Shown piece by piece: positions 17,501-50,497 of a DNA stretch of 62,119 nucleotides (its first letter is position 1; each line of letters begins with the position of its first letter). The translations under genes and the position numbers were made by a program. This DNA comes from Gracilinanus agilis (taxonomy: Eukaryota), in the NCBI RefSeq assembly GCF_016433145.1, contig NC_058132.1, positions 28,975,890 to 29,038,008 on the forward strand. Direction: 5' to 3'. The notes below the pieces were generated by a model, which was not told the DNA's origin, did not search any database, and saw only the letters and a program-made list of their open reading frames with translations.

Positions 17501-19465
17501 GACCCAGCCCCCCCTGCCAGTCCTGCCCCTCCAGCGCCTACAGGCTCTTTCATCCACAAAGCCACTCCCCCAGCTCGGTCTCCTCGAGGCCCCAGGAGCC
17601 CTGCCCCACCCACTGCCCTGGATATCTCTGAGCCTGTGGCCGTCTCTGTGCCTCCTGCTGTCCTGGAACTGCTGGGAGGGGGTGCCCCAGCCACCCCTTC
17701 CCCTCCACCTGCCACCCCTGCTCCCCAGCTCATCCCTCTACTGCTGCGCAGTGCTGAGACAGAGTTGAGTGACAGCTGCCAGAGGGAAATCCGGAGTAAA
17801 TTGTCCTTAACCAGCCAGAAAGACCTTCAAGGCTCACTGAGTGAGTAAGAAACCTCCCACCTGGCCCCAGGAACCCCAGCCTCTGGGCCTCAGGGACCAA
17901 GCAGCAGCTCCTCCATTCTAAGGTCTTCCCCCTCTCCTCTCCATACAGGTCCTGTGCCTGGGTTTGAGTCCCCACCGATGCCCGTTCCCTTGTCTCTCCT
18001 TCGCCCTGGAGGGGCCCCTCCTCCGCCCCCCAAGAATCCGGCTCGCCTGATGGCCCTTGCTTTGGCTGAGCGAGCTCAGAGGGCAGCCCAGCGTCAGCGC
18101 CAACAGGAGATGGGGGGTACAGTCCCACCCCTACCTCGCTCCCCTTTCCGGCGTTCCCTGTCCCTGGAAGGGGGTGGTGGGGAAACTCCAGGGGTGGGGG
18201 CCCCCAGGCCCCTCTACTCCATGGTAAACCCCAGCCACCCAGCACCAGGGCCCCCCGCCTCCTTGCAGCGGCAGCAGAGTGATGGGGGCCTGCTGCGCAC
18301 ACAAGTCTCTGGTCCTCCACGGAGGGAACGAAGAGCTCCTGCTCAGGTCAGTGAGGACAGAGTCCCTGACTCTCCCCTCCAGGCTGCCCTTAGTTCTGTG
18401 GGGTTTGGCCAAATGAAGGTTTGCCCACCCCGCTTAGGTAGGCCCATCCTCTAGGCCAGTGATGGTGAACCTTTTAGAGACCGTGTGCCATGCCGTGCCT
18501 CTCCACACACACACACACACAGGAGGAAGCTCTCCTATTGGGCTGCTGGGCAGAGGGCTGGGGAGCAGCTCCACCCAAGTCTCTAGTAACGATTTGGGGG
18601 TGGTAGGTTCTTGGTCACTGGGCCTTCTAGGGACTTCCCCAACGAATCCCATTCTCCGTCACAGGTGCCTGCCTCCTTCTTCGCTGTGACCTCCCCCAGC
18701 CCCAAGGAGCGTCCCTCACCCTTCTCTGGCCCCCCCAAGCCGCCGCTTCATTCCTTGGGTATTCCTTCCTTCCGGTCTGGACCCCCACCCCCTACCCGGA
18801 GGACTCCACATGGTCCCCCCTTGCCACCTGACAAGGGGGAAAATCTGTACTACGAGATCAGTGGGAGCGAGGGGCCTCCCTACCCAGGCCTGCCCCGGCC
18901 TTGGGCTCCCTTCCACCAGGCCCCAGAGGGGCTCAGTACTTCCTATGGGATTCGGGAACAGTCACCACCCCAGGGTCCCCCTGACTTCCTCTTCTGCTAC
19001 CCCCCACCTCAGCCATACTCCCCGGCCTTGCAGCCTTTTTCCCAACATGGCCGCCTCTGCTACCACCCCCAAGAGTCCCGGCGTCACCCAGCCCATCTGG
19101 AACCTGTCTATGTCAACCTGCCCCTGGGTGGGGGTGGACCCTCCCCTACTTCCTCCTCTTGTTCTTCCTCCCCTCCTGCCCATCCCCGAAGTCGCTCTGA
19201 CCCTGGCCCCCCTGCCCCACGACTCCCCCACAAGCAGCGATCACCTTGGGGGCCACGGCCCCCTCGACCCTGGGGGCCTCTAGATCCCCTCCTCCTCTAC
19301 CGGACACCCACCCAGGCCTATGGGAAAGGAGGAGGGGAGGGTCCTCATGGAGTCCAATATGGCAATGTGGGGGATGGACACGGAGAGGGGGCTGGCCCCC
19401 CACCCTCCTACCTGCCCCCAAGCTGGTCCCTCCATGCTAAGGGCCAAACTCACAGCTACTGCTGA
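8538..19465 (+). CDS. ARHGAP33: Rho GTPase activating protein 33 (PX-like, SH3, RhoGAP, Pro-rich tail)
   Basis: Exon 1 MV at 8538-8543 and exon 2 ARSTDNLDGPGEG at 10241-10338. Also seen: GRSWPVLRSYEDFRSLD, SH3 exons, RQRVFGCDLGEHLSNSGQD, TLEYLLRHLSRMAQHSADTSMHARNLAIVWAPNLLR, and the C-terminus SWSLHAKGQTHSYC*. Confidence 0.97.
8700..9750 (+). repeat. Pyrimidine-rich low-complexity tract (CTCTCCCTCC-like units) in ARHGAP33 intron 1
   Basis: Strong C/T strand bias with recurring ctccctcctccctctca units. Confidence 0.7.
18457..18600 (+). mobile_element. Truncated hAT-type MITE
   Basis: Starts CAGTGATGGTGAACCT, a hAT TIR-like sequence. No matching TSD was found on the right side. Confidence 0.5.
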
Positions 19466-19934
19466 GTCTCCCAATCTTTCTTTTGTAAAATGGCCCCTTG
19501 AGTTGATGAATGGGAATCCCGGGGCCCCAGCTGGGTGTGCCTGTTGATGACTGAGGTCCCTCTCAAGAGTCGGACCCTAGTGCCATCACTGGCCCTGGGG
19601 CCCCAATTCAATTCTCCCTCCATTTTGTAATTTTTCCCAATTCCTCAAGTTTCTAACTTTGTAAACTGTTCCAATGTGATCTCATAACCTGTAACCGTAG
19701 TTTCTCTCTGCTCCCCTCCCCACCCTGGGGTTTCTTGCACTAATCTGGGGGAGGCTGAACATGCAAACACTTCATCTCCCCCCAACCTCCAGGGATCCCC
19801 CAGCATGTCCTGCTCCCCTCCCTGTATGTGTGTGTCCAGATGAGGGGCTTCAGGGGTGCGTGTGGGTGTGTGCGTGTCCCGGACGAGCCCCAAGCCTGAC
19901 AGCTGTGTACTAAACACTTCAAAACATTAACAGA

Positions 19935-19940
19935 AATAAA
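19935..19940 (+). terminator. AATAAA polyadenylation signal of ARHGAP33
   Basis: AATAAA 470 nt after the stop codon, followed by a GT-rich stretch. Confidence 0.75.
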
Positions 19941-20011
19941 AGTAAAAATGATCTGTGGATTGGCATGTGTTTGATCATAGTGAGAGACGGGAAGAAGCTG
20001 GCTGGGGAAGC

Positions 20012-20017
20012 TTTATT
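20012..20017 (-). terminator. AATAAA polyadenylation signal of the TEX14-like gene
   Basis: TTTATT on the + strand, ~50 nt downstream of the predicted stop at 20069-20071. Confidence 0.7.
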
Positions 20018-20068
20018 GGGTTTGGGGGTCAGAGAGCCGACACCGACTGGGTTCTGCATCTTCTACTC

Positions 20069-23000
20069 TCAGCTCCTTGGCTTGGGGGGCCCTGAGGGAC
20101 AGAACCAGAGATGCCACGGCTGAGCCACATTCCCCAGGCCTGCTCTTCAAGGCCTCAGGAACCCCCATGGGCCAGGGTTTGGGGAATGTTTGTTCATACA
20201 GGTCTTGTCTGTGCTCCCCCCCACCATCCCTCACCTCATCCCCCCACCTCACCCTGTAGTTCTGTGATGATCTCCTCTAGCAGGTCTAGCCTGGGGGAGG
20301 GGGGACAACATAAAAGGCTGGCGTCATGATGGAGACCCCTCAAGGAAACGGAAAATGCTTGGGGGCTGGAGAAGGGACTGCCAGCTACTTACTTCTGCAG
20401 GCTGGTGAAGGGGCCTTCCTTGGCCAGCTCAGGGACCAGCACCTGGCAGGGAAGGGACAAAGGCTGCGCTTCAAGTCCATATGACCTGTGCTACACGGAG
20501 ATGATTCCCAGCTGGGGCGCCAGGAGGGAGGACCCTGGCAAGGCGGCCCCCCCAGAGCTTGTGGGGCCTTCCAAGCCCCAGGAGGGCAGACACTGCCCCT
20601 TCTTTCTCTGCATCCCTAGATCCCACAGGGGAAGGCCCTCCAAGGTCCCCTCAGGCGGCCCCTTCATTTTGTTGTGGTCGGGGAGCGTAGGAGGGACCCG
20701 ACTCCATTCAGCGTCGAACACAGGCTGGATGTGTGTGCACTGCTCACCTTTAAGCCCCACCAATGCACATTCCTTCTTCCTAATCCCAAAACAACTGGTG
20801 CTCCTCATACTACCTATCTTTCAGGGCACTGACAACAGGAGGGAAGTGAGGAGGGCAGCCTCTTCATTCCTTTGTCCGAGGGAGGTGGGGCGGTCAGTCA
20901 ACTCTAGAAGCCTCCTCCCCAGGCCCAGAGCCTCCACACAAGCGCCAGCGCTGAGGGCTCCCTCTAAGGCCTCTGAGCTCTGCAGGCCACTCCAGGCCTA
21001 CAAGCCCTGGGAGGAAAGGAGCACGTAGGAAGTGGACCCCTTCTGATCACAGCCTCCTTGTCCCCGGCCCCCAGATCCCTACCTGGGTCCGACCCTCCTG
21101 TCTGTCCAGGTTTCGGGCCCGGGCTGCAAGGTCTATGCACTCCTGAAGACTGGGGCCACCTGGGGGCAAGGGGAAGGTCCTCAATCACTGAGGAGGAGGA
21201 AGGCCTTTGTCCTCGCTCCCCTCCTCACTTACTCTGGGGACAGGCGGACTGGGATGTCGGGGCCTCTGGGCTGTCTCCCAGCAGCTCCTGCAGGGTCCGG
21301 ATCCTGGCTGAGAACCTTCTCTCCAGCCTCTCCAGGGAGCCCTGGGCCTGGCCCAGCAGGCAGGCCGACTCTCTCAGACTGGTCAGCAGCGACGGCCTCT
21401 GACAAGAGCAGAGGGAGGGCCTGGGTCAATGGCCGGGCAGTGAGCAGGCAGCAGGAGAGGGCAGGAGGAAGGGCCAGGGCAGGCAGCCGGCCCTACTACC
21501 TCAGTGCAGGCGGCCTTCCTGCCCTCCGCTGACGACTCTTCGTCTGGCTGGGACGTGAGGCTCAGGCTGCTCCCTAGAGTCAGGCTGCTGCCCGAGTCCA
21601 AGGCTGGGGAGCTCCAGGTGTTCTCCCAGGCCCCGCTGCTCCCCGGGGACTTCAAGGCCTAGACGGGAAATGGAGGAACGCGGGGCCTCCTCTCTGCGCC
21701 CCCGGCCGCCCCCGCCCCGCCCTCGGTCTCCCTCCCACCAACAGCCCCATTACCTCGGATGGCTTGGGGTTGGGGACCGTCTTGGGGGACGGAGGCCTAG
21801 GTGTGCTAGTGACCTTGGGCTGCGCCTCCAACAGCGGCTCTGTGTGCGGGGGGCAAGGTAAATGGCGGCAGCCCGGCGGGGGGTCGCCCCCCCTGCCCAC
21901 GTGCCCCTCCTTACCAGGCGGCGGGGGGCTCTTTGGCTCCGAGGAGGGGCTCCCCAGAGAAGTTTCCTGGAGTGCCGACTCCTGGGGACGAGATGGCCTG
22001 TCAGCACCCGGCGGGTCCTGCCTGCCCCCCATTGCGCTTCATCCCCCAGTCCAGCGTCTACCTGAGCCAGCGCCACCCTCAGCTTGTAGCGGGCGTCCTG
22101 CAGGCTGCCCTTTCGGTCTCGAGCCCACAGCCCCAGGCCGGCCTTGACCAGAGACTGGTAGGCCGGGGGAACCCGGGCCTCCAGAGGCGGCCCCTCCCCA
22201 GACTCCAGCTTCGCCTTGACCTGCAGGCCTTCCTGTCCGGCCCAGGGAAGGTTTCCTGTGGCAGCACATTGAGGGGGGCAGGAACAGGAAGAAGAAAGCG
22301 CTCATCAGGGGTGCGGGGAGGTTGGGCAGGGGGAGACGCCCAGTTGGGGTGGCCGGAGACCCATCACTAACCAGTAAAGACCTCTTGGGCCAGGATGCAG
22401 AAGCTGTAGAAGTCGGACGTCAGGGTCGGGGCTTCGCCTCGAATCAGCTCCAGCGGTAACCAGGGGTACAGCTCGGAGGGTGGAGGCGGCCCCGGGCTGG
22501 GGCCTCCCCAAGGAAACGCTCTCTCTGGTCTGCGGAGCCAGAGGGAGGGGGTGAGCCGGCTGTGTGCAGGATGCTGGGGGTGGGGGACGGGCAGGGCAGA
22601 CGGGCCGGAGGTCACTCACTGGGGCCGGGGCAGGGCCCGCCCGTGTTCCAGGTGGCTGACTTTGACCAACCCCGGTCGGACCAGCTGGACTGCGTGGGAG
22701 CTGAGGCCGCCATGGGCCCGGGCCTGGCCTTGGAGGTAGAGCAGGGCCTCCAGCACCTGTAACAGCAGCTGCCCTGGGGAGAAGCCGGGGGGAATCCTGG
22801 GGCAGGAGGCGTCCTGGTGGGGAGAGAGGGCAGCGTCCAACTGCGGCCACCTCTCTGGAGTGGTCATGATGCTGGGCCGAGAGCTCACCCCACTATCTCC
22901 TCCAAGCCCGGGAGAAGGCAGGCCAGGCTCTCCTCCCGTCCCCCAGCCACAGCGCAGCCACGCCAGGCCCTGGCCAGGCTCTCCTCCCACTTCCCCGGTG

Positions 23001-25623
23001 CCGCAGGAGCCCCAAAGTGCGCCCCGACAGGAAGCTGCCTGATGGCCCGGCTCCTCGCTCCCCCTGCCCGCCCCCTCCGTGGCTCCAGGGAAGGCCCTGT
23101 GGAGCCGGGCACTACTCACCCCTGGGGGGTGTAGCACGAGGTGCAGGGAGCCCTCCTGGATGGGCTCAAACAGGAGGCACAGGCCAGAGAGGTCCGGGGA
23201 GGGGCTGAGGGCCATGAGCAGCAGCAGGTTGGGATGGTGAAGGAGGCTGTGGGAGGCAGGAGGACGCTGGGGCCGACTCCCAGGGGTCTGGGCCCTCCTC
23301 CCCGCCCCCTCCCCTGCTGGCCCCAGAACTCTCCGAGCACAGCGCCTGGCACAGCGCCTGGCACGCGGCGGCCCCACACGTTTAGGGACCAAACCCGAGC
23401 AGTACCTGCAGTGCTTCAGGTCGGACAAAAGCAGGTCTGGGAGCGCCGGGGCTGGGGGTGGCTTCAGTTTCCGCACGGTCACTGGGTGTCCCCTCCACAG
23501 GAGGCTTTGGGACACAAGAGCAAGATCAGGGGACAAGAGGCGGCCCAGGGAGGGGGGGGGCTGCAGAGGTACATGGCAGGGGGTGGGGGACCCTGCTGGG
23601 TTTAGGGGAGGATGGCCAGAAGGACGCTGCTCTGATGGGCCTTTCAGCTCTCTCACTTGACCATGATGGTGTGGGTGCCGCACTCATAGGTCCGATCAGG
23701 CTCCCCCTGTGCTGGCAGCAGCTCCTCAGGATCAACCAGGGGAACCCCAGATGTGAGCCCCAGAGGCCTCAGACTGCTCAGCTTGGGAGAAGGGGAGAAA
23801 CCCCATTCAGCTAGGCCCAGTTGGAGGCCCTTGGCCTCTCCCCTTCCTTCTCCTCTTCCATGAGTCGCTCCTACTTACCTGGCCAAACCCCAGTCCTGGG
23901 ACCTGGGGAGACCTCTGGACTTGCTGGGGCCACAGTGACCTGGGGGTGGGAGGGAGGTCAGCACCCAGCAGGTGCTCTTTCCCCCAGGGATAATGGGAGA
24001 AGGGTCCAGGCAGGGCAGGTGAAGGAATAAGCAGCATCAGCTATTACCCTTCAGCCTGAGGCAGGAGCTGGGAAGGCAGGGTCAGGTGGAGGCTTCCCAG
24101 GGATCCAGCCCGGAACCCCCACAGCTCCCCCAAGGACGAAGCCAGTGCAGTCTCACCCCCCTGGGCCAGCAGGGCCATTCTGGCTCGGCATTCTCGAAGC
24201 AGCTCCAAGACCTAGAGGGTGCGGCATGGGACAGGTAGGGCCAAAGAGGCATGTTCAGTGGCGCCAAGCCTTATGGGACTGGCAGCTTTCAGGTATCAAA
24301 GGGGACGTTGGGGGCTGACCCAGGATTTCATGGGGACGGGGCCTCCTAGTGTGGAAACACCTGCTCCCTGCTCTGAATTCTTGGTCTTGAGAGTTGCTTC
24401 TGAGAGGTTCTTCCCGAGTCCCACCCAGCAAAAGGCAGCCTAGGCTGGCCTGGCCTAGACAGAGCCAGGGCCCACTTCTGCCTCGTCCTGGCAGCTCAGG
24501 GATCACTTCTACAAGCAGAAATGGCAGAAAGATGCTGCCTTTGGAACGGTGGAGAGCATGTCCTCATCCTGGAGGTCCCCGATACTCATGAAATCTCGGG
24601 TGTCGTCTGTCCCCATCCCCCATGAGATTGGACCTGGACCCCATCTTCCTGTCTCTGTGGCCAGCTCTAACTGCTATTCTGAGTCATTTTGTCTTCAAAT
24701 GGAATTTATTAGTATTAAATCAGATATATCCAGAGTCCCACCCCATCCCCATCTTTTGTCAGACCCTGCCCTAATGCCACACACACACACACACACACAC
24801 TCACTTCCCAGCTCTCTGCTCCAGCCTGCTGGGCCCAGTCCTCTGCTGTCCAGCCCTGCTGGTCATGCAGTCTCAGGTCTCCTCCAGCCTCCAGCAGCCA
24901 GAGCATGACCTGGCAGTGGCCAGAGAAAGCTCCTGCATGGACTGGGGTACTTCCATCCAAGCATCGGCTGTGGGGAAGAGACAAAGAGAGGGACACTGAG
25001 GCACTGGGGGAGAGACCAACGGGAAGGTAAGGAACTGGAAGAGAGGGGAGCTGGAGATGAAGGGAGCCAGATGACACCCTTGGAGGGGGGCATCACAGAA
25101 GAGCTTGGCTTTGGGGCTGAGGAACTCACTGGTTGGGGTCTGCTCCAAAGCGGAGAAGAAGTTTGACAAAAGCTGCCCGGCCCAGCAATGCTGACAGGAA
25201 GAGGCTGGTCTGACCCGATGAGTTTTCTCCATCCACCTGTACCCCTGGGGGGCAAAGGAGGAGGGGAAAGAAGGGGCAGGAAGCCTCTGGATGGGCATGC
25301 TGGCACTTTCCACGGCACTGCCCACCCAAAAGATTCTCTCCATGTCTGATCAACAAGTAACTTCTGTGGATCCCATGCCCACATCTCCCTCTGCCAACAA
25401 ATCCCCCTAAACTCCATGACCAGTCTGTATGCCCTTCCCCAGCCCCCCCCCCCCCACTGCATATCCATGCTGGGCACCTCCAAGAGTCACCTTTTTTGAG
25501 CAGTCGGGCCAGCCGCCAGCAGGGTCCCCCAGCAATGGCCAGTCGGTGTAGCTGGGCCAGGGGGCTATCCTGCTCACTCAAGGAACCCAGCTTGATAGGG
25601 CACTGAGGGGGGAGGGTGGGCAT
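20069..25623 (-). CDS. TEX14-like protein: N-terminal ankyrin repeats, pseudokinase domain, low-complexity/coiled-coil tail (~742 aa)
   Basis: Coding exons (high to low): 25623-25491, 25244-25130, 24967-24805, 24211-24048, 23939-23879, 23781-23657, 23504-23406, 23246-23120, 22813-22620, 22559-22372, 22255-22062, 21981-21915, 21839-21754, 21658-21500, 21398-21233, 21159-21083, 20442-20393, 20290-20253, 20091-20069. All are GT-AG, phases are consistent and the total is 2229 nt with no internal stop. CPIKLGSL..AQLH, GQTSLFLSALLG, HRCLDGSTPVHAGAFSG and LLEAGGDLRLHD closely match TEX14 as recalled. The last ~6 exons are less certain. Confidence 0.88.
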
Positions 25624-25929
25624 GAGGGGGGCTGCCCACTGGTCAGCCAAGGGCCAGGCTGGGGACAGGGGGGAGGGCCTGAGAGGGGCAGGGCAGAAGC
25701 CCCATGGGGATGGCCGGTCAGCAGAGGGCTGGGGGGGAAGCACTAAGAGGGAGAATAAGGGAGGGGGCTGCGGGCATGAAGGGGCTCTGGGGAAGGGCAG
25801 CGGGGTTACAGGGTTGATTGGGGGAGATGGGATGGTCTACGGGATTAGAAGAGGGGGGTGTGGAGGAGGAGGGGAGGAGGAACTAAGGGAGGAGCAAGGA
25901 AGGGGGACAGGCGTGAGGGGGGGATTTGG

Positions 25930-26270
25930 GGGAGCAGCCTCGAACAGAGACCGTTTGGTAGGCGCCCCGACCCGAGTTTGGATACCCGGCTCGTTGGCAA
26001 GGGCTGTGGGCGGGAGAAGGAGGAGCGCATGCGCACGAGACCCGGCGCCTACACCTCAACCTCCCCTCCCCTCCCCTCCCCCACCGCGCTGTTCTGCTTT
26101 ACGGCACCTGCGCAGTCCGAGCGGCTCCTGGGCCTGAAAGCGGGAAAACGTCAGGGGTGCGAGAGCGCCGGGAGCGGTTGGGAACCGTTAGTGACGTCAG
26201 AGGCGCCAGGGCCACGGCGGACTGAGGGAGGCTGAAACCCGGAACGGTGAAGAGAGTTCCCCCGCCGATT
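25930..26270 (-). promoter_or_regulatory. CpG-island promoter of the TEX14-like gene with NRF1, E2F/E2F6, MYB and CRE motifs
   Basis: GGCGGGA 26009-26015; GCGCATGCGC 26025-26034; TTTCCCGC (minus strand) 26140-26147; MYB-like CAACCG (minus) 26175-26180 and TAACGGTT (minus) 26183-26190; TGACGTCA 26192-26199. Confidence 0.65.
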
Positions 26271-29200
26271 GAGGGGCTCTGCTTGGAGACCTGAGGGACC
26301 TCCTCCCTGCCCCCCAGACTGAAAGAAAAGCCTGAGACCTCCCCCAGCCCTCTAGAGACTGGCGGGACCCCCTCCCCACTTAGAGACTGAGGGACTCCCT
26401 CGATCCCCAGAGATTGAGACTTACTGTACCCCCCACCCCTAGAGACTGGAGGGACACCCCCCTCACACCCTCCGGAGCCCGAGACTTCCTCCGCCACCCC
26501 CTACAGGGGCTGAGGAACTTCCCTCCCTGAGTAACCTTCACCCCCATCCGAGACTAAGACTGAAGGAACCCCGTCATCACGGCCTTAGAGACTGAGACTT
26601 CCCTAACCCCCCAGACACTAGAAAAAGGCGGACCCCTCTCCACTCTCAGAGATTGAGGGGAACCCCCTACCTCCCCAGAGTCTGACTCCCTCCAAAGACC
26701 CAGATCTCCCTCACTTTCCGGAGCCTGAAGGGGGACCCCCCTCACCTCCCTTAGAGGCCCAGAGATCTCTTATATCCTCCTTAGAAACTAAGAGATCTTC
26801 CTCACTCCCCTACCCCTTATAGACTGAAGAGACGGAGACCTCCATCAGACCTCAGACGGAAAGAGCCCTCTCCTCTAGAGACCTCCCTCACACTCCTAGA
26901 GAGTGACTGACCCTCCCCACCCCACCCTCTTAGAGCTTGAGAGACTCCTTCACCCCAAAGCTAAGGGAAGACTGAGGGACTCCCCTTTATCGAGACCAAA
27001 GGATCACTCTCTTAACTCATTCCTCCAGAAACTAAAGGATTCCTCTCACACCCTGAGCTTAAGGGACCTTTTCTCACCTAACCTAGAGACTGAGGGTTCT
27101 CCCACAAACTAAGGTACCTCTTTCACCTGCTCCCCCAGAGACTGAAGGACTTCCCATAGAACACAAAATGAGGATCTCCCATAAATTTCACCAACTGAAG
27201 GACTCCCCTAGATACTGAGAGACCTTTCTCAACCTACCCCTCAGACTGAGGGACACCTCTCCATTATAGAAAATAAGAACCCCTCCCTCACCCTTCTTAG
27301 AAACTGAAGGACCCCCCCAAGGACCCTCCTTATCCAACACCTCCCAGACTGAAACCCCTCAGATCTCACAGACTAAATGGCCTCCCCTCATCCCCTCTAG
27401 ACTACTGAGGAACCCCCACAGACCTCAAAGACTAAAGGATCTCCCCTCATCCCCTCTAGAGACTAAAGGACTCTTCTTACCTTAGGCCAGTGGTTCCCAA
27501 ACTTTTTTGGCCTACCGCCCCCTTTCCAGAAAAAATATTACTTAGCCCCCTGGAAATTAATTTTTTAAATTTTAATAGCAATTGGAAAGATCAATGCACC
27601 TGTGGCCATCACCGCTGTCCTGGATCGCTGCAGCACCCACCAGGGGGCGGTGGCGCCCACTTTGGGAATCACTACCTTAGGCCATAAACTGAGGAACTCT
27701 CCTCAACTGCCCTCCCCACTCCCAGAATACAGAACTCCACCTCAAAGACTGAGGGACACCCCAAACACAGACTTCAAAGACTGAGGGGCCCTTTCAGCCT
27801 ATCTCACAGACTACCTCTCACCTCAATCTTGGAGTCCAAAAGACTCCTCTAGCCTATAGACTGAGGGGCTCCCCTCACCCCAGAATCTTAAGGGACATTC
27901 CTCACAGGCTGTAGGATCCCTCCACAGCTCCACAGATTTGAGAGATCCCCTTTACCCTACCTTACAAACCAAGAGACCCTCCTTATTTTCCCTCACAGAA
28001 TAAGGGACTTCCTCACTTTACCTCAGAGACTGAAGTACCCTCCACATCCTGCCTCACAGACCAAAGGAACCCCCTCCACCCTAGCAACTGAAGGGCAAAA
28101 CTTGGGGACTAGACTAAGGGACTCTACCTCAGTCTGCCTAAGAGTAAGGGATTCTCTTCATGTATTCATCCCAACTTATACTGAGGATCTTCCTACCCCA
28201 CTACAAAGACTGAAAGGCCCCCCCACAGAAAAGGGACCCCTCTACTGTAGAGTTTGAGAGACCCCTACAGACTGAGGGAGCCCTTCACCCTACTTTATAT
28301 ACTGTGAGGCCTCTCACATCATCCCAGACTGAAGAATTCTCCACAACTCCCCAAAGAACAAAGGGTTCTCCATAGACTGAAAGATCTTCCACCTTACTCC
28401 AGACCCTTTCTCAGACCCCAAAGACAGAGACCTTCAAACTCCATAGCTCTTAGACCCCATTTCAGAGACCAACAGACATTACGGACTTAGGAACCACCCT
28501 TACACAATCTAAAAACCAAGGGATCCTCTTCACACCTCCAGAGACCAAAGTATCTTCCCAGACCTAACACTGAGGAACCCCCACCCAGATTCCACAGATC
28601 TCACAAACTTAAGAACTCTTTCCCCCAGATATGAATCTACTAGAAACCATAGAACCTTCTCAGATCATCTATACTGTGGGACCCCCCCCATCCTCTAGAG
28701 ATTCCACAAAGTGAAGGATTCTCTTCATCCCACCCCAAGATTTCGTAGATCAAGGAATAAGCACTTTCTACCCTCCCAGAGACCCATTAGTCTGAGGACT
28801 TTGAAAAAGACTTTGTAAAACAAAGGACCCCCTTCAAGACTCCACAGATTGGGGCTCCCTTAAAACAACTCTCCTTTAGCTTCTTCAGAGACCCCATAGC
28901 TCAAGGGATTCTACCTCAGCAACTCAAGACTCCACAGGGCCCCCTTTCCTTCTCCCAAGATCTCATAGACCCAGGGATCCTTCCCAGCCTCTCCTTCAGG
29001 CCTATAGTCTGAGGGACCCATACCCATACATACCCCCCGGAGAGAACCAGGCCACAGATCAAGGGATACCAACTCAGCCTCCCCCATCAGGGACTCCAAC
29101 AGAGGTACCCATCTGCCTAGAGAATCTTTGGGATTCCCTTTAGCCTCTCCCCAAAGATTTCAGAATTTGAGGGGTATCTTCCAAAGACCCAACAGAGGGA

Positions 29201-29760
29201 TCCCAATGAGTATCTCTATAGAGGGATCCCTCAGCCTTCCACCAGTCAAACTTCACAAAAGGGCCCTCCCCTCGGCTTCTCTTCAATCAGATACCTCTTA
29301 AGGAAAACAGCTCTTTCAGTAATTAGCTCCCCAGTCAATTCTCAGAGGGGCTCAGAGATGAAAATGTTCCCCTATTTCCTACCCCTCATTAAAGTTTCCT
29401 TCTGAAATACCTCATACCCTCAGGCACTAAGACCAAGGTATTCTCTTACTTGCTGCTTCCCAATTAAAAACCCGCTCAATAGGTGCCTTTCCCTTCAGGC
29501 TCTCCTTAGCAAGAGACCCCAAAGTAGGACTCTAGGCGTCTTACTCTTAGAGCCCCAATCCATAAGCACCCCACAGAAGGACTCAAAGGCCAAAAGAGTC
29601 TTGCCTCTGTTTGCTCTGCACTCAGAGGCCCTATAGAGGAGCTTAAAATCCAAGACAAGCTTCCCTCAGCCTTGTAGCCCAGCCCTCCCCAGATGACCTA
29701 ACAGGTCTTGGATACCAAGGCACCTTCTCATCCTCTGCTCCCATTTCAGAGACCTCCCAG
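26260..29760. repeat. Degenerate minisatellite built on an AGACTGA(G/A)GGA(C)CCCC motif
   Basis: The motif recurs dozens of times at irregular 20-50 nt spacing. C-rich on the + strand; no long ORF. Confidence 0.7.
27488..27674. mobile_element. hAT (Charlie-type) MITE, 187 bp
   Basis: TIRs CAGTGGTTCCCAAA ... TTTGGGAATCACTA with a perfect 8-bp TSD CCTTAGGC (27480-27487 and 27675-27682). Confidence 0.9.
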
Positions 29761-30041
29761 GACAAAGTGGCTTAGGGAGTGGGGCACCTTCCCCTCAATG
29801 AACTCCTTTCAGCCCCGTGAGAAACCTAGGCATCCTCCCTCCCAATTCAGGGTCTCCACAGAGTGTCTCGGCCTGAATCCTCCTGGGCGAGTTGGTCCAA
29901 TCCCTTCATTTTGCGGATGAAAGGACTGAAGCCCAGAAACTCATAGTTGCTTGCCCAGTAGTCAAAGGATCTAACAGGAAACTGCAATTCCTAGGCTCAA
30001 GTGCAAATAGCACAGATAGATGTGGTTTTTTCTTCAAGACC

Positions 30042-30047
30042 TTTAAT
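30042..30047 (-). terminator. ATTAAA polyadenylation signal of PRODH2
   Basis: TTTAAT on the + strand, ~60 nt after the PRODH2 stop. Confidence 0.55.
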
Positions 30048-30105
30048 GTCAGCTATCAGGGTGGGGAGAGGGGAAGCCAGAAACGAGGCGGGAACATGTG
30101 ACGTC

Positions 30106-33100
30106 TTAAGGACGGCGGGACAAACGCCGAAGAAGCTCCTGGCTCAGCAGCTCCTGCTCTCTCCTCGCCCCTTGAAGCACACTTCTATTCTCCTGGGCCC
30201 GACGAAGCAGGTAGGGAATTACCTCCTCCAGAGAACCATAAGGGATAGACTTGTAGATGGAGTAACCAGCCTGCCCTGGGTAAGAGAGGATATCGGGGGA
30301 ATGGGGACTGGCCTTCTCCTTCATGCTTCCTTCCCCACAGATAATGGCCCTCTCATCTTGACTTCACTATTACAGACCAAGGGCAGGCTCAAATTGTGGA
30401 CGGAGAAGGGAAGAGAGAAGGCTATTAGATTGAAAATTATGCCCATGAGAGCAGGGATCGAGGGCAGGCTAGTCTAATGGGAACACATACCCAGGGCAAG
30501 GGAGACATGGTCACACATGCCGAGCAGCTGTCCAAAGCAAACAGCACCATCTGGAGGAATCCCCAAATCTGACATCCTATGGCATTTGAAAACAAAGTTA
30601 ATGCTCTACAATAAACATTTAAGTGCCTGCTGTGTGTAGTGCTCTGTGCTTGATTCATGATGGCCTCTGAAAGGGAGGAGGAATTCTTTAGCCTGCCATG
30701 TAAAGCCCTCACCCTCCTCTCAAGTCTTTGTTCCTAGTGCTCCCACTCTCTATAGAATCATCGACATGTCCATCTCCCATCTCCTGCTCTGTGCCTTTGC
30801 TTAGGTGCCTGGGCCCCATACCTGGAATACACTCCCTCTCTCATCTCCCTCATCTGCGCTAAGCTCTTCTTGATCCTTTCATTTTTGTGGTTCTCTTTTC
30901 CCTCTGAAATTCTCTTGCTTTAGGAGTAGCCTCACACTGAATGGTCACTAATAACGTTGGTTAAATTGAAAAACCTTTTCATTACAAAAAGTTATATATA
31001 AAGTTAATAAACCAAAGAGCAGGATTTATATAGCACTCGTACTCATTTGAGTTAGGTACAGCAGGTAGTGTCCCCATTTTGCAGACAAGGAATCAGAAGT
31101 GTTTAAGGCAGAATTTGTACCCAAGTTAGTCCCGAGGCTATGTCAGTCCAGCATTCTTTCCACTACACCAAATATTTTGGTGTAAGGTTAGGTAGGGAAA
31201 GTTCTTAAAAGAGAGCCCATAGGGCAAGACAGTAGACCCACTTCCTTTTCCTGCAGCTCTGAATCCCTCTCCTCCTGGCCCCAAGAGGAGATCAGGCTTC
31301 AGCTGAATCCTTCAGATCTGCAACTGCCTCTTGAGAATCTTGGACACATCACTGAACCTCCTTGGACTTGCTTTTCTCCCTTCTAAATACGGGAATTGAA
31401 ACGATTACCTCTAAAAAGCTCTGCACTGCTTCGGATAGTCTCTGCATCTCTAACCCCCTCATCATCTTGTGCTTGCTTTCTTTGGCCTTTCCTGCCTCTT
31501 TAAGAATACCCCCCAGGCTCCCCCTCTCCTCTGGCCCCAGCCTTACCGCTTGACTGCCTGGCGCACAGACTCTTCATTGTGGGACGCTACCATGAGCTGA
31601 CATCGTGAGCCCCGGCGGCTAACGTGCCCTAACATCAGCTCCAGGCATCGGCTGTAACTGGGGGAGGGAGGATGGGAGGGAAGGTATGGGAGTCACTGGT
31701 CCATGGTAAACCTAATCCATGTCTCTACCCTCACTCCCTTCTGTGGGAGCCCCACTCTTGCCTACCTTCGGCTTGTGTCCTCATAGTTGGGCTGGGTAGG
31801 ATCTGCTGTCCCGCTCTGCTGGGCAAGCGCCCGCTCTGTCTCCAGATATGCCCCACGAACCAGCTTCACCCCAAAGGCCAGACCTCCTCTCTCTGCTGCC
31901 TCTGCTGCCTGATTCAGCCGCTCATGAGTGTCCTGAGGTGGTAGTACAGGAGGCAGGGGACGTAAGAGACCGGGGGTCTTTCCCCACCCACTCCGAGGGG
32001 CTTCTCGGCTCCCTTTCCCTAAGCTGCTTGTTACCTTGAGATAGGCCTGGTAGGTGTTCCACACCCAGGGAGCCCCATCCCTATCGACTTCCTCTGGGCA
32101 GTTCCAACGGACAGCCAGGGAAGACACGAACAGGGTCAGTGCTGGGTTCAGAAAGGTGTACTCTGCATCCACCAGCAGCCTCACACCCTGCTTCCGGGCA
32201 TACTGTGGAGGAGGATAAAAGAGATGGGGGTCACTGGACTCTGGCTCTGGAATGGAGTAGGGGATTTGAGGGCTTTGTTTGAAATGAGGGGGAGCACCTT
32301 TGGAAGAACTGGGGCTGAAGTAGATATTGGGGTTCACCTGGGCAATGCGATGGAAGCGGCTCAGCGAAGCTCTGAGGTGCTGGTTCTGCTCAGGGCTGAG
32401 ACTGGAAATCGAAAGGTCCTGAGGGAGAGCAGAGCTTAGATTCAGGGCCTTCAGGGAGACGTTCACAAATACTTTGGGGATAACGGGTGTTTGGAGAGCC
32501 TCACCTTACCACTTTCCATGGTGGTAGCAAACCTTTCAGGGCTTAGCTCCCTGGCAGTCCCAGGCTCCCTGAGCCGGAGTGTTAGTTCTTTCTGAAATGG
32601 GCAGCAAAAGTGGGGTGGGGAATTAAGGGGTGCATAGTTCAGGATTCAAATTCAGGTCCAACCCCCAAGTTCTCCCCCAGATCTTGGGTGTCTTACGCAG
32701 AGTTGGGCACTGGTCAGTGCTGTCACTTTGAGTTGCATGAGGGCAGGCTGTGGTGGTGGGGATCCTGGGGGCCCACAGGACAGATCCACACAGTGCAACA
32801 TAGCATTGAGGTTTTCCTCATACCAGGCTTCTCTGCAGACCAAAGAGAACCTGAGTTGCCAAGGTCCTGCAGGTCCTTTTCTTTCAGGTTTCTCACCCCC
32901 AAAAGCTTCTTTCTCTTGTCTCCACCTTCCCTTTACTCTCGTCTTGCATTTCACCCTCCCTTGATCCATGTTCTTACCCTCCCCGATCTGTCCCCGGCTC
33001 CTCCTCAGTGGGCACAGCCAGCAGTGGCCGTAGCCGGAGGCCCTGAAGTCTCTGGACAGAGCCTTGCACCTCAGCAGTTGTCTCCCCAGCCACAAACTGC

Positions 33101-50352: not shown

Positions 50353-50497
50353 NNNNNNNNNNNNNNNNNNNNNNNNNNNNNNNNNNNNNNNNNNNNNNNN
50401 NNNNNNNNNNNNNNNNNNNNNNNNNNNNNNNNNNNNNNNNNNNNNNNNNNNNNNNNNNNNNNNNNNNNNNNNNNNNNNNNNNNNNNNNNNNNNNNNN
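50353..50497. other. Assembly gap (145 N)
   Basis: Run of N; both flanks look like the 5' UTR of the same minus-strand L1. Confidence 0.99.

Follow-up and report, generated by a model that had tools for sequence, protein, structure and literature searches.

Does a gene related to TEX14 on the minus strand of Gracilinanus agilis contig NC_058132.1 encode a catalytically dead protein, and does that protein lack the means by which TEX14 grips CEP55? An earlier note, made from the letters of a 62,119-nt stretch (positions 28,975,890 to 29,038,008 of the contig; hereafter the window, whose own numbering is used throughout), had claimed both, and had proposed a CEP55-independent partner, modulator or antagonist of TEX14. 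TEX14 is an intercellular-bridge factor that is essential for germ-cell bridges and male fertility. Its GPPX3Y motif competes with ALIX and TSG101 on CEP55, as summarised in PMC13216642. From the rebuilt gene, its transcripts and its relatives, we find that the window carries the didelphid orthologue of the vertebrate TEX14-like gene, and we consider it quite probable that its product, a dead ankyrin-kinase, serves as a non-catalytic scaffold without the CEP55 grip of TEX14.

Gene model, transcripts and orthologues

Exons were mapped by combining tblastn with orthologous proteins, splice signals and RNA contigs, yielding a gene of 19 exons (E1 to E19, Table 1) on the minus strand at 25623-20069, with a coding sequence of 2199 nt (732 codons plus TGA). 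The start ATG lies at 25623-25621 and the stop TGA at 20071-20069, all 19 exons have AG/GT borders, the phases agree and there are no in-frame stops. The region read in the earlier note, 20069-23504, extends from the first base of E7 to the last base of the stop codon and makes up the 3' two-thirds of the gene, with the kinase-like and tail parts. The encoded protein has about 732 residues and consists of three ankyrin repeats, a linker, a non-catalytic kinase fold and a Pro/Ser-rich tail, mostly disordered, in which three helices are conserved.

Four sequencing runs were available, one DNA run covering 99% of the stretch (likely the genome source) and three smaller runs from the same study covering 23-31%. 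The smaller runs were taken as RNA because they carry ten minus-strand GT..AG joints, none of which occurs in the DNA run. These joints comprise E7/E8, E8/E9 and every junction from E11 to E19, and a single RNA contig runs through E13-E14-E15-E16. The link between E6 and E7 appears as an RNA loose end at 23504, which consists of the last 17 nt of E6. An alternative acceptor for E7 at 23561 was rejected, as the wombat model and this loose end place the acceptor at 23506-23505. The gene is transcribed and spliced, and since the joints extend over the tail, the translated tail is the expressed one and no further exon hides between kinase domain and stop codon.

Two introns were also found unspliced. 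The 75-nt intron at 21840-21914, which is in frame and free of stops, was both spliced (joint 21839/21915) and retained (contigs 21811-21944) in three of three RNA runs; its retention would add 25 Gly/Pro-rich residues, and the equivalent segment is kept in the wombat RefSeq model. The 640-nt intron at 20443-21082 was unspliced in a 694-nt contig in two RNA runs. Contig depth was about 210-250 over the last three exons (two runs) versus 3-12 over the kinase exons; we considered a short 3' transcript as the cause of this gradient and drew no conclusion, as contig depths cannot rank parts of the gene; 3' bias may also account for it.

To identify the gene, searches were run with single open reading frames (ORFs) or exons, and full-length orthologues served as stand-ins for the window protein. 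The kinase ORF, searched against 1.8 billion representatives, gave 55 matches, headed by the wombat "inactive serine/threonine-protein kinase TEX14-like". A search of 90% clusters retrieved the gene under the name "TEX14-like" in more than 100 mammals and reptiles (RefSeq), with further entries named "Rho GTPase activating protein 33, opposite strand" (Mus spicilegus), "gene model 1082-like" (cattle) or annotated as PRODH2 fusion models (several species). In the window lies the orthologue of this RefSeq "TEX14-like" gene, which in mouse is called Arhgap33os (formerly Gm1082). Per-exon identity was about 91% to the Monodelphis domestica model, with matching exon structure, motifs and C-terminus (ELQGPPKPRS), and 79-89% to other marsupial models, which have NLE where the window has HLE at the DFG position (Asn instead of His) and show species-level differences only.

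A kinase fold with its catalytic positions replaced

Kinase motif positions were fixed by aligning the lungfish orthologue to MLK4 and EGFR and were carried to the marsupial sequences via family alignments. This placed the degenerate motifs where they had first been read: VTVRK at 23482-23468, with Arg (23473-23471) at the position of the VAIK lysine, HGG at 22714-22706 (HRD), HLE at 22654-22646 (DFG) and PLE at 22456-22448 (APE). E9, which reads AHGGLSSHAVQL and, further on, VSHLEHG, contains the family's catalytic-loop signature H-x-x-L-[ST]-S-H-A-V-Q-L. At the five catalytic positions (VAIK Lys, alphaC Glu, HRD Asp, catalytic Asn and DFG Asp) the window gene has Arg, Lys, Gly, Ala and His, and its glycine-rich loop is degenerate as well, so that the residues of an active kinase are not found. 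The string GLGFGQ at the end of E5 is no P-loop, given the low model confidence there in the orthologue.

Neither TEX14-like nor TEX14 nor the invertebrate homologues (salmon louse, abalone) have the HRD Asp, the Asn of the catalytic loop or the DFG Asp. At the HRD site other members have HRA, HRS or HCS, and mammalian TEX14-like has HGG; the catalytic Asn is replaced by Ala or Ser and the DFG Asp by N, S, H or G. Absence of the three residues from all groups means that the pseudokinase state is ancestral to the bilaterian family, being already present in mollusc and crustacean homologues, and does not reflect degeneration of this copy. The description of the paralogue as catalytically dead thus holds as far as the missing residues go, but it does not set the gene apart, because TEX14 and the invertebrate homologues share the loss. 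Changes specific to TEX14-like are the beta3 Lys replaced by Arg in all members and APE replaced by PLE or PPE; the beta3 Lys is kept in the vertebrate TEX14 sequences sampled, and Arg is also present in two invertebrate homologues. Within TEX14-like, the change from HRx to HGG and the loss of the alphaC Glu (DLKHC in marsupials) are specific to mammals.

The scaffold of a TEX14-family paralogue is retained, as the earlier note had held. N-terminal ankyrin repeats gave weak Pfam Ank/Ank_2 matches on exon ORFs, and the orthologues carry PF12796. The Antechinus orthologue, 86% identical, was modelled with AlphaFold2 (AF2) from a 56-sequence alignment. The mean predicted local distance difference test score (pLDDT) was 70.9; most of the ankyrin repeats (1-153) and of the kinase fold (230-520) scored above 90, and the tail was disordered save for helices at the coiled-coil block, at SLQxxIDLS and at the C-terminal LDLLEEII block. 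Using Foldseek, the kinase part of this model matched SYK, CSK, TAK1 and CTR1 with template modelling (TM) scores of about 0.8 and about 20% identity. A search of the PDB with the raw 355-aa ORF returned only noise, because intron-derived residues dominate this ORF.

A fold so well preserved in the AF2 model and the Foldseek matches might be taken to retain nucleotide binding or an atypical catalysis, and some pseudokinases are generally known to employ non-canonical residues; with five canonical elements lost together and a degenerate glycine-rich loop, however, we regard this as barely conceivable. Under the reading that we prefer, TEX14-like would act as a non-catalytic scaffold whose ankyrin/pseudokinase module and C-terminal helices bind partners.

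The tail and the CEP55-binding motif

The coding frame contains three GPP strings and no more, GPPPPSE (from 22492), GPPLEAR (from 22193) and GPPKPRS before the stop codon (20253 + 20091-20072, its Gly codon split between E18 and E19 at 20253 + 20091-20090). None has Tyr at position 7, and the three are those first listed for this gene. We found no GPPx3Y in the three minus-strand frames of 19900-25800, introns included, and no [G/A]PPx2-3Y in any minus-strand frame of 19000-30200. The RNA contigs leave no place for a hidden tail exon, and the motif is missing from every frame of the locus, so the claim that the gene lacks GPPx3Y stands. All six tyrosines of the protein lie in E6-E11 and the tail (E12-E19) has none; the DEVD element that flanks the TEX14 motif is also absent from the window gene. 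Two strings that might pass for remnants of the motif were discarded: "GPS LQE C", where E15 meets E16, is part of the conserved SLQxxIDLS block, and an out-of-frame GPPPPAMY at 23592 is intronic and lies four codons past a stop.

Composition predicts 0.006 occurrences of GPPx3Y in such a protein, so the absence is unremarkable by itself and has meaning only by contrast with the motif that the TEX14 clade conserves at a fixed place. TEX14 tails have a coiled-coil block (VLNLKxSQxLLQQ...), then DEVD and, about 25 residues on, A(V)[G/A]PPx2-3Y, in which A, P and P are invariant and Y is near-invariant. The variants are GPPx3Y (caecilian, anole, one frog, one fish), GPPx2Y (other frogs, teleosts) and APPxCY (shark, ray). 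The scan of orthologues for GPPxxxY that had been proposed for this gene gave none in the TEX14-like sequences examined, from ray to mammals, and none of these has a motif of the TEX14 type downstream of the coiled-coil block. Four invertebrate homologues had no GPPx3Y, and the relaxed pattern gave only a non-PP string in abalone. Across these alignments the absence from TEX14-like is clade-wide and ancient, and parsimony suggests that the motif is a feature of the TEX14 lineage which TEX14-like never acquired, rather than one recently lost; an early loss is the less simple reading.

Lacking both DEVD...AxGPPx2-3Y and any tyrosine, the tail of the window protein would be unable to fill the EABR site of CEP55 as TEX14, ALIX and TSG101 do, and with that site not occupied the protein would not block abscission by the TEX14 mechanism. 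Its general family relationship to TEX14 could still speak for a non-canonical binding to CEP55 or another abscission block redundant with TEX14, as could the tolerance of some TEX14 orthologues for variants of the motif, namely GPPx2Y (frogs and teleosts) and APPxCY (shark and ray). We judge this very unlikely, given that not even the relaxed motif occurs in any frame of the locus, that the tail is free of the tyrosine which is near-invariant in TEX14, and that the flanking DEVD is missing too.

The tail blocks of the TEX14-like clade are all present in the window: a coiled-coil S-L-x-E-S-A-x-L-L-x-x-A-Q-x-S-L-E-x-L-E (E15), SLQxxIDLS (E16) and a C-terminal LDLLEEIIxEL (E18). To compare them with TEX14, we aligned profiles of 14 TEX14-like and 10 TEX14 tails; only the coiled-coil block aligned, over 35 columns with an E-value of 0.016 and at a collinear position, and blastp pairs gave the same picture. 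The alignment is suggestive of a marginal tail resemblance. Of the TEX14-like tail blocks that the earlier note had described, the coiled coil LRESACLLGQAQGSLERLERRF therefore finds a weak counterpart, but SSLTLGSSLSL was not recovered in the TEX14 tails; neither was the C-terminal helix, and both are features of TEX14-like.

Annotated models differ in how they read this part of the tail. Wombat XP_027711299 reads E15 in another frame and loses the coiled-coil block, and several koala isoforms skip E15/E16; the conserved frame is used by the Dromiciops, Antechinus and Monodelphis models and by the RNA joints of the window; the deviating wombat and koala models probably represent minor isoforms or errors of annotation. 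Placental and non-mammalian TEX14-like sequences share a short motif [LP]-Y-[YF]-E-[VIL] directly behind the kinase domain (alignment columns ~105-112; ~21839-21820 in the window), whose aromatic residues the marsupials, including the window gene (EPLLEA), have lost.

Evolution, locus and known systems

We built a maximum-likelihood tree on the ankyrin and kinase half of sampled representatives, to which the window gene was assigned by its 79-91% exon identity to marsupial clade members. TEX14-like formed a clade apart from TEX14 with 100/99 support, comprising ray, lungfish, newt, caecilian, turtles, squamates and mammals. Within TEX14, elasmobranchs joined tetrapods (98/98), and three teleost-type sequences formed a group of their own whose link to these the tree did not resolve; invertebrate homologues (salmon louse, abalone and two others) made up a third group. 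Because Mobula hypostoma, a ray, has one TEX14 and one TEX14-like gene, the duplication is older than the crown gnathostomes, and the tree indicates that TEX14-like is an ancient sister gene of TEX14 which cartilaginous fish and mammals both inherited from their common ancestor. Among the sampled representatives, the TEX14-like clade contained no teleost sequence; teleosts keep TEX14.

This history bears on a direct relation between the two proteins. TEX14-like could interact with TEX14 physically, as partner, modulator or antagonist, for instance by pairing via the coiled-coil block or by competing for a shared partner such as centralspindlin. The common ankyrin-pseudokinase architecture, the one collinear block that aligns between the tails and the retention of both genes since before the ray/bony-vertebrate split are consistent with such a relation; but the tail similarity is marginal, and with teleosts keeping TEX14 and none in the sampled TEX14-like clade, TEX14 may not need TEX14-like. 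On balance we hold it unlikely. More doubtful still is the specific version in which TEX14-like, independently of CEP55, belongs to the same cytokinesis or kinetochore machinery as TEX14 or regulates it, with recruitment via the ankyrin-pseudokinase module or the coiled coil and with the LDLLEEIIxEL helix as the dock for a partner. If true, vertebrates would have a second, unstudied bridge or abscission factor.

To assess constraint, we aligned codons exon by exon with the Antechinus flavipes locus and summed the counts; the match of E19 (6 codons) is spurious and does not affect the totals. The ratio of nonsynonymous to synonymous substitution rates (dN/dS) was 0.12 over the ankyrin and kinase part, 0.25 over the tail and 0.16 overall, at a synonymous rate (dS) of about 0.49. 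In E18, the proportion of nonsynonymous differences (pN) from Antechinus was 0, and of seven marsupial models covering this exon, six match LDLLEEIITELQ at 12 of 12 positions and tammar at 11 of 12. The gene is under purifying selection and is not decaying. A unitary pseudogene in the making, transcribed and with a residual ORF, could account for the long mammalian branch with its further eroded motifs, for the introns retained in RNA contigs and the low depth over 5' exons, and for the many RefSeq isoforms that are short or skip tail exons, together with the wombat model that reads E15 in another frame. We regard it as highly improbable against 19 of 19 exons intact with canonical splice sites and annotated orthologues in more than 100 species; the low dN/dS at this divergence and the unchanged E18 exclude a decaying pseudogene.

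Several points weigh against a non-catalytic scaffold without the CEP55 grip, or against the model behind it. In the three RNA runs, E1-E5 and E10 have no covering RNA contigs, so the 5' half of the model rests on homology; E6 is supported by the 17-nt loose end alone, and the E9/E10 intron appears only unspliced, in one RNA contig. The literature searched held no binding or localisation data on any TEX14-like protein, and the scaffold role is for this reason one that we infer. The mammalian stem branch of TEX14-like is long (0.95 changes per column), and with the alphaC Glu, the Arg of HRx and the LYYEV-type motif lost here, its role in mammals may not be the one it has in other vertebrates. 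Finally, sequence alone may leave room for a non-canonical binding to CEP55.

Table 1. Exons of the TEX14-like gene and its polyadenylation signal in the window
Feature	Coordinates	Strand	Content	Basis
E1	25491..25623	-	ATG, N-terminal segment into first ankyrin repeat	tblastn to marsupial orthologues, GT donor
E2	25130..25244	-	ankyrin repeat	weak Pfam Ank/Ank_2 matches on ORF, AG/GT and phase check
E3	24805..24967	-	ankyrin repeat	Pfam Ank_2; 51/54 identical to Antechinus; RNA: unspliced piece 24947-25150 only
E4	24048..24211	-	helical linker after ankyrin repeats	orthologue alignment; AF2 helices 132-172 in Antechinus orthologue
E5	23879..23939	-	linker ending GLGFGQ	orthologue alignment
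E6	23657..23781	-	kinase-like N-lobe start, degenerate glycine-rich loop	41/41 identical to opossum and Dromiciops models
E7	23406..23504	-	beta3 VTVRK and alphaC (DLKHC, Glu lost)	RNA joints, motif tables
E8	23120..23246	-	N-lobe and hinge (LLHHPNLLLL...)	RNA joints on both sides; 42/42 identical to opossum model
E9	22620..22813	-	catalytic-loop remnant HGGLSSHAVQL, DFG remnant HLE	RNA joint on 5' side
E10	22372..22529	-	GPPPPSE and APE remnant PLE	weak Pfam PK_Tyr_Ser-Thr match, orthologue alignment
E11	22062..22255	-	C-lobe end, GPPLEAR	RNA contigs, joint to E12; 63/64 identical to opossum model
E12	21915..21981	-	Pro/Ser-rich tail start	RNA joints
E13	21754..21839	-	EPLLEA at place of LYYEV-type motif	RNA joints, tail alignment
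E14	21500..21658	-	DSGSSLTLGSSLSL block (SSLTLGSSLSL) at 21589-21557	RNA joints; block conserved within TEX14-like
E15	21233..21398	-	coiled-coil block LRESACLLGQAQGSLERLERRF at 21377-21312	RNA joints fix frame; 54% identical to lungfish; predicted long helix
E16	21083..21159	-	SLQECIDLAAR helix block	RNA joints; conserved SLQxxIDLS
E17	20393..20442	-		RNA joints
E18	20253..20290	-	LDLLEEIITELQ, best-conserved tail element	conserved back to ray
E19 coding part	20069..20091	-	(G)PPKPRS then TGA 20071-20069	RNA joint 20091/20253; same C-terminus in opossum model
AATAAA polyadenylation signal	20012..20017	-		read from sequence; RNA contig extends to 20010

Gene order around the locus is kept among marsupials. 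In wombat, the gene is preceded by a Pro_dh gene of the same strand and followed by a convergent SH3-RhoGAP gene; the latter is also present on the 3' side of the Antechinus gene. The window has the same order, with Pro_dh-like ORFs at 30106-32466 (minus strand), about 4.5 kb upstream, and a proline-rich terminal ORF at 18611-19465 (plus strand). The former we take to be PRODH2, given the Pfam Pro_dh match of the wombat neighbour. RefSeq contains PRODH2/TEX14-like fusion isoforms in pig, bear, desman, mouse lemur, gerbil and fruit bat, which hint at read-through transcription. On the other side, the ARHGAP33-like (SH3-RhoGAP) ORF at 18611-19465 ends about 550 bp from the polyadenylation signal of TEX14-like; the 3' ends of the two genes probably overlap, hence the mouse name "Arhgap33 opposite strand".

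Other observations concern the DNA itself. A patch at 26000-26499 (GC 0.66, CpG observed/expected 0.59), 400-900 bp upstream of the ATG, is the sole CpG-enriched one near the gene and a plausible promoter candidate. A (GT)n microsatellite at 24780-24804 begins right at the E3 donor. Position 20974 is C in all four runs, including the DNA run, and T in the window, an assembly/read difference or an allele, and the DNA run has one extra C after 25442, inside a G/C run of intron 1. Positions 50353-50497 are 145 N, a gap or masked sequence.

The window copy is an ordinary, correctly read gene, already annotated as TEX14-like. What gives it interest is that the sister of the bridge factor TEX14, annotated in well over a hundred vertebrate genomes, goes in mouse by the name of a mere "opposite strand" transcript. 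The literature searched contained no functional study of the TEX14-like gene and no Arhgap33os in titles or abstracts, the name occurring once each in three of the papers listed; one match to "Gm1082" was Gm10824, a different gene. TEX14-like offers a comparative handle, in that the roles of the ankyrin-pseudokinase core and of the coiled coil can be studied without CEP55 activity.

Among known systems, TEX14 (SgK307) is the closest. TEX14-like/Arhgap33os is probably SgK424 of Manning's human kinome, which would place it with SgK307 in the NKF5 family. Both proteins have N-terminal ankyrin repeats followed by a kinase fold without HRD Asp, catalytic Asn and DFG Asp, both carry the signature H-x-x-L-[TS]-S-[HY]-A-V-Q-L, and both have a coiled-coil block after an acidic/Ser-rich stretch of the tail. 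TEX14 differs in being about twice as long, in keeping the beta3 Lys and APE and in having DEVD...A(V)[G/A]PPx2-3Y downstream of the coiled coil, where the window gene has none; its tail ends in W..PHRVI in the three full-length sequences that we had (caecilian, halosaur fish and shark), whereas the window protein ends in ELQGPPKPRS. By sequence, the nearest solved kinases are MLK/DLK/CTR1-type TKL kinases and tyrosine kinases. In likely manner of action the nearest analogue may be ILK, which is generally known as a scaffold in which ankyrin repeats precede a pseudokinase.

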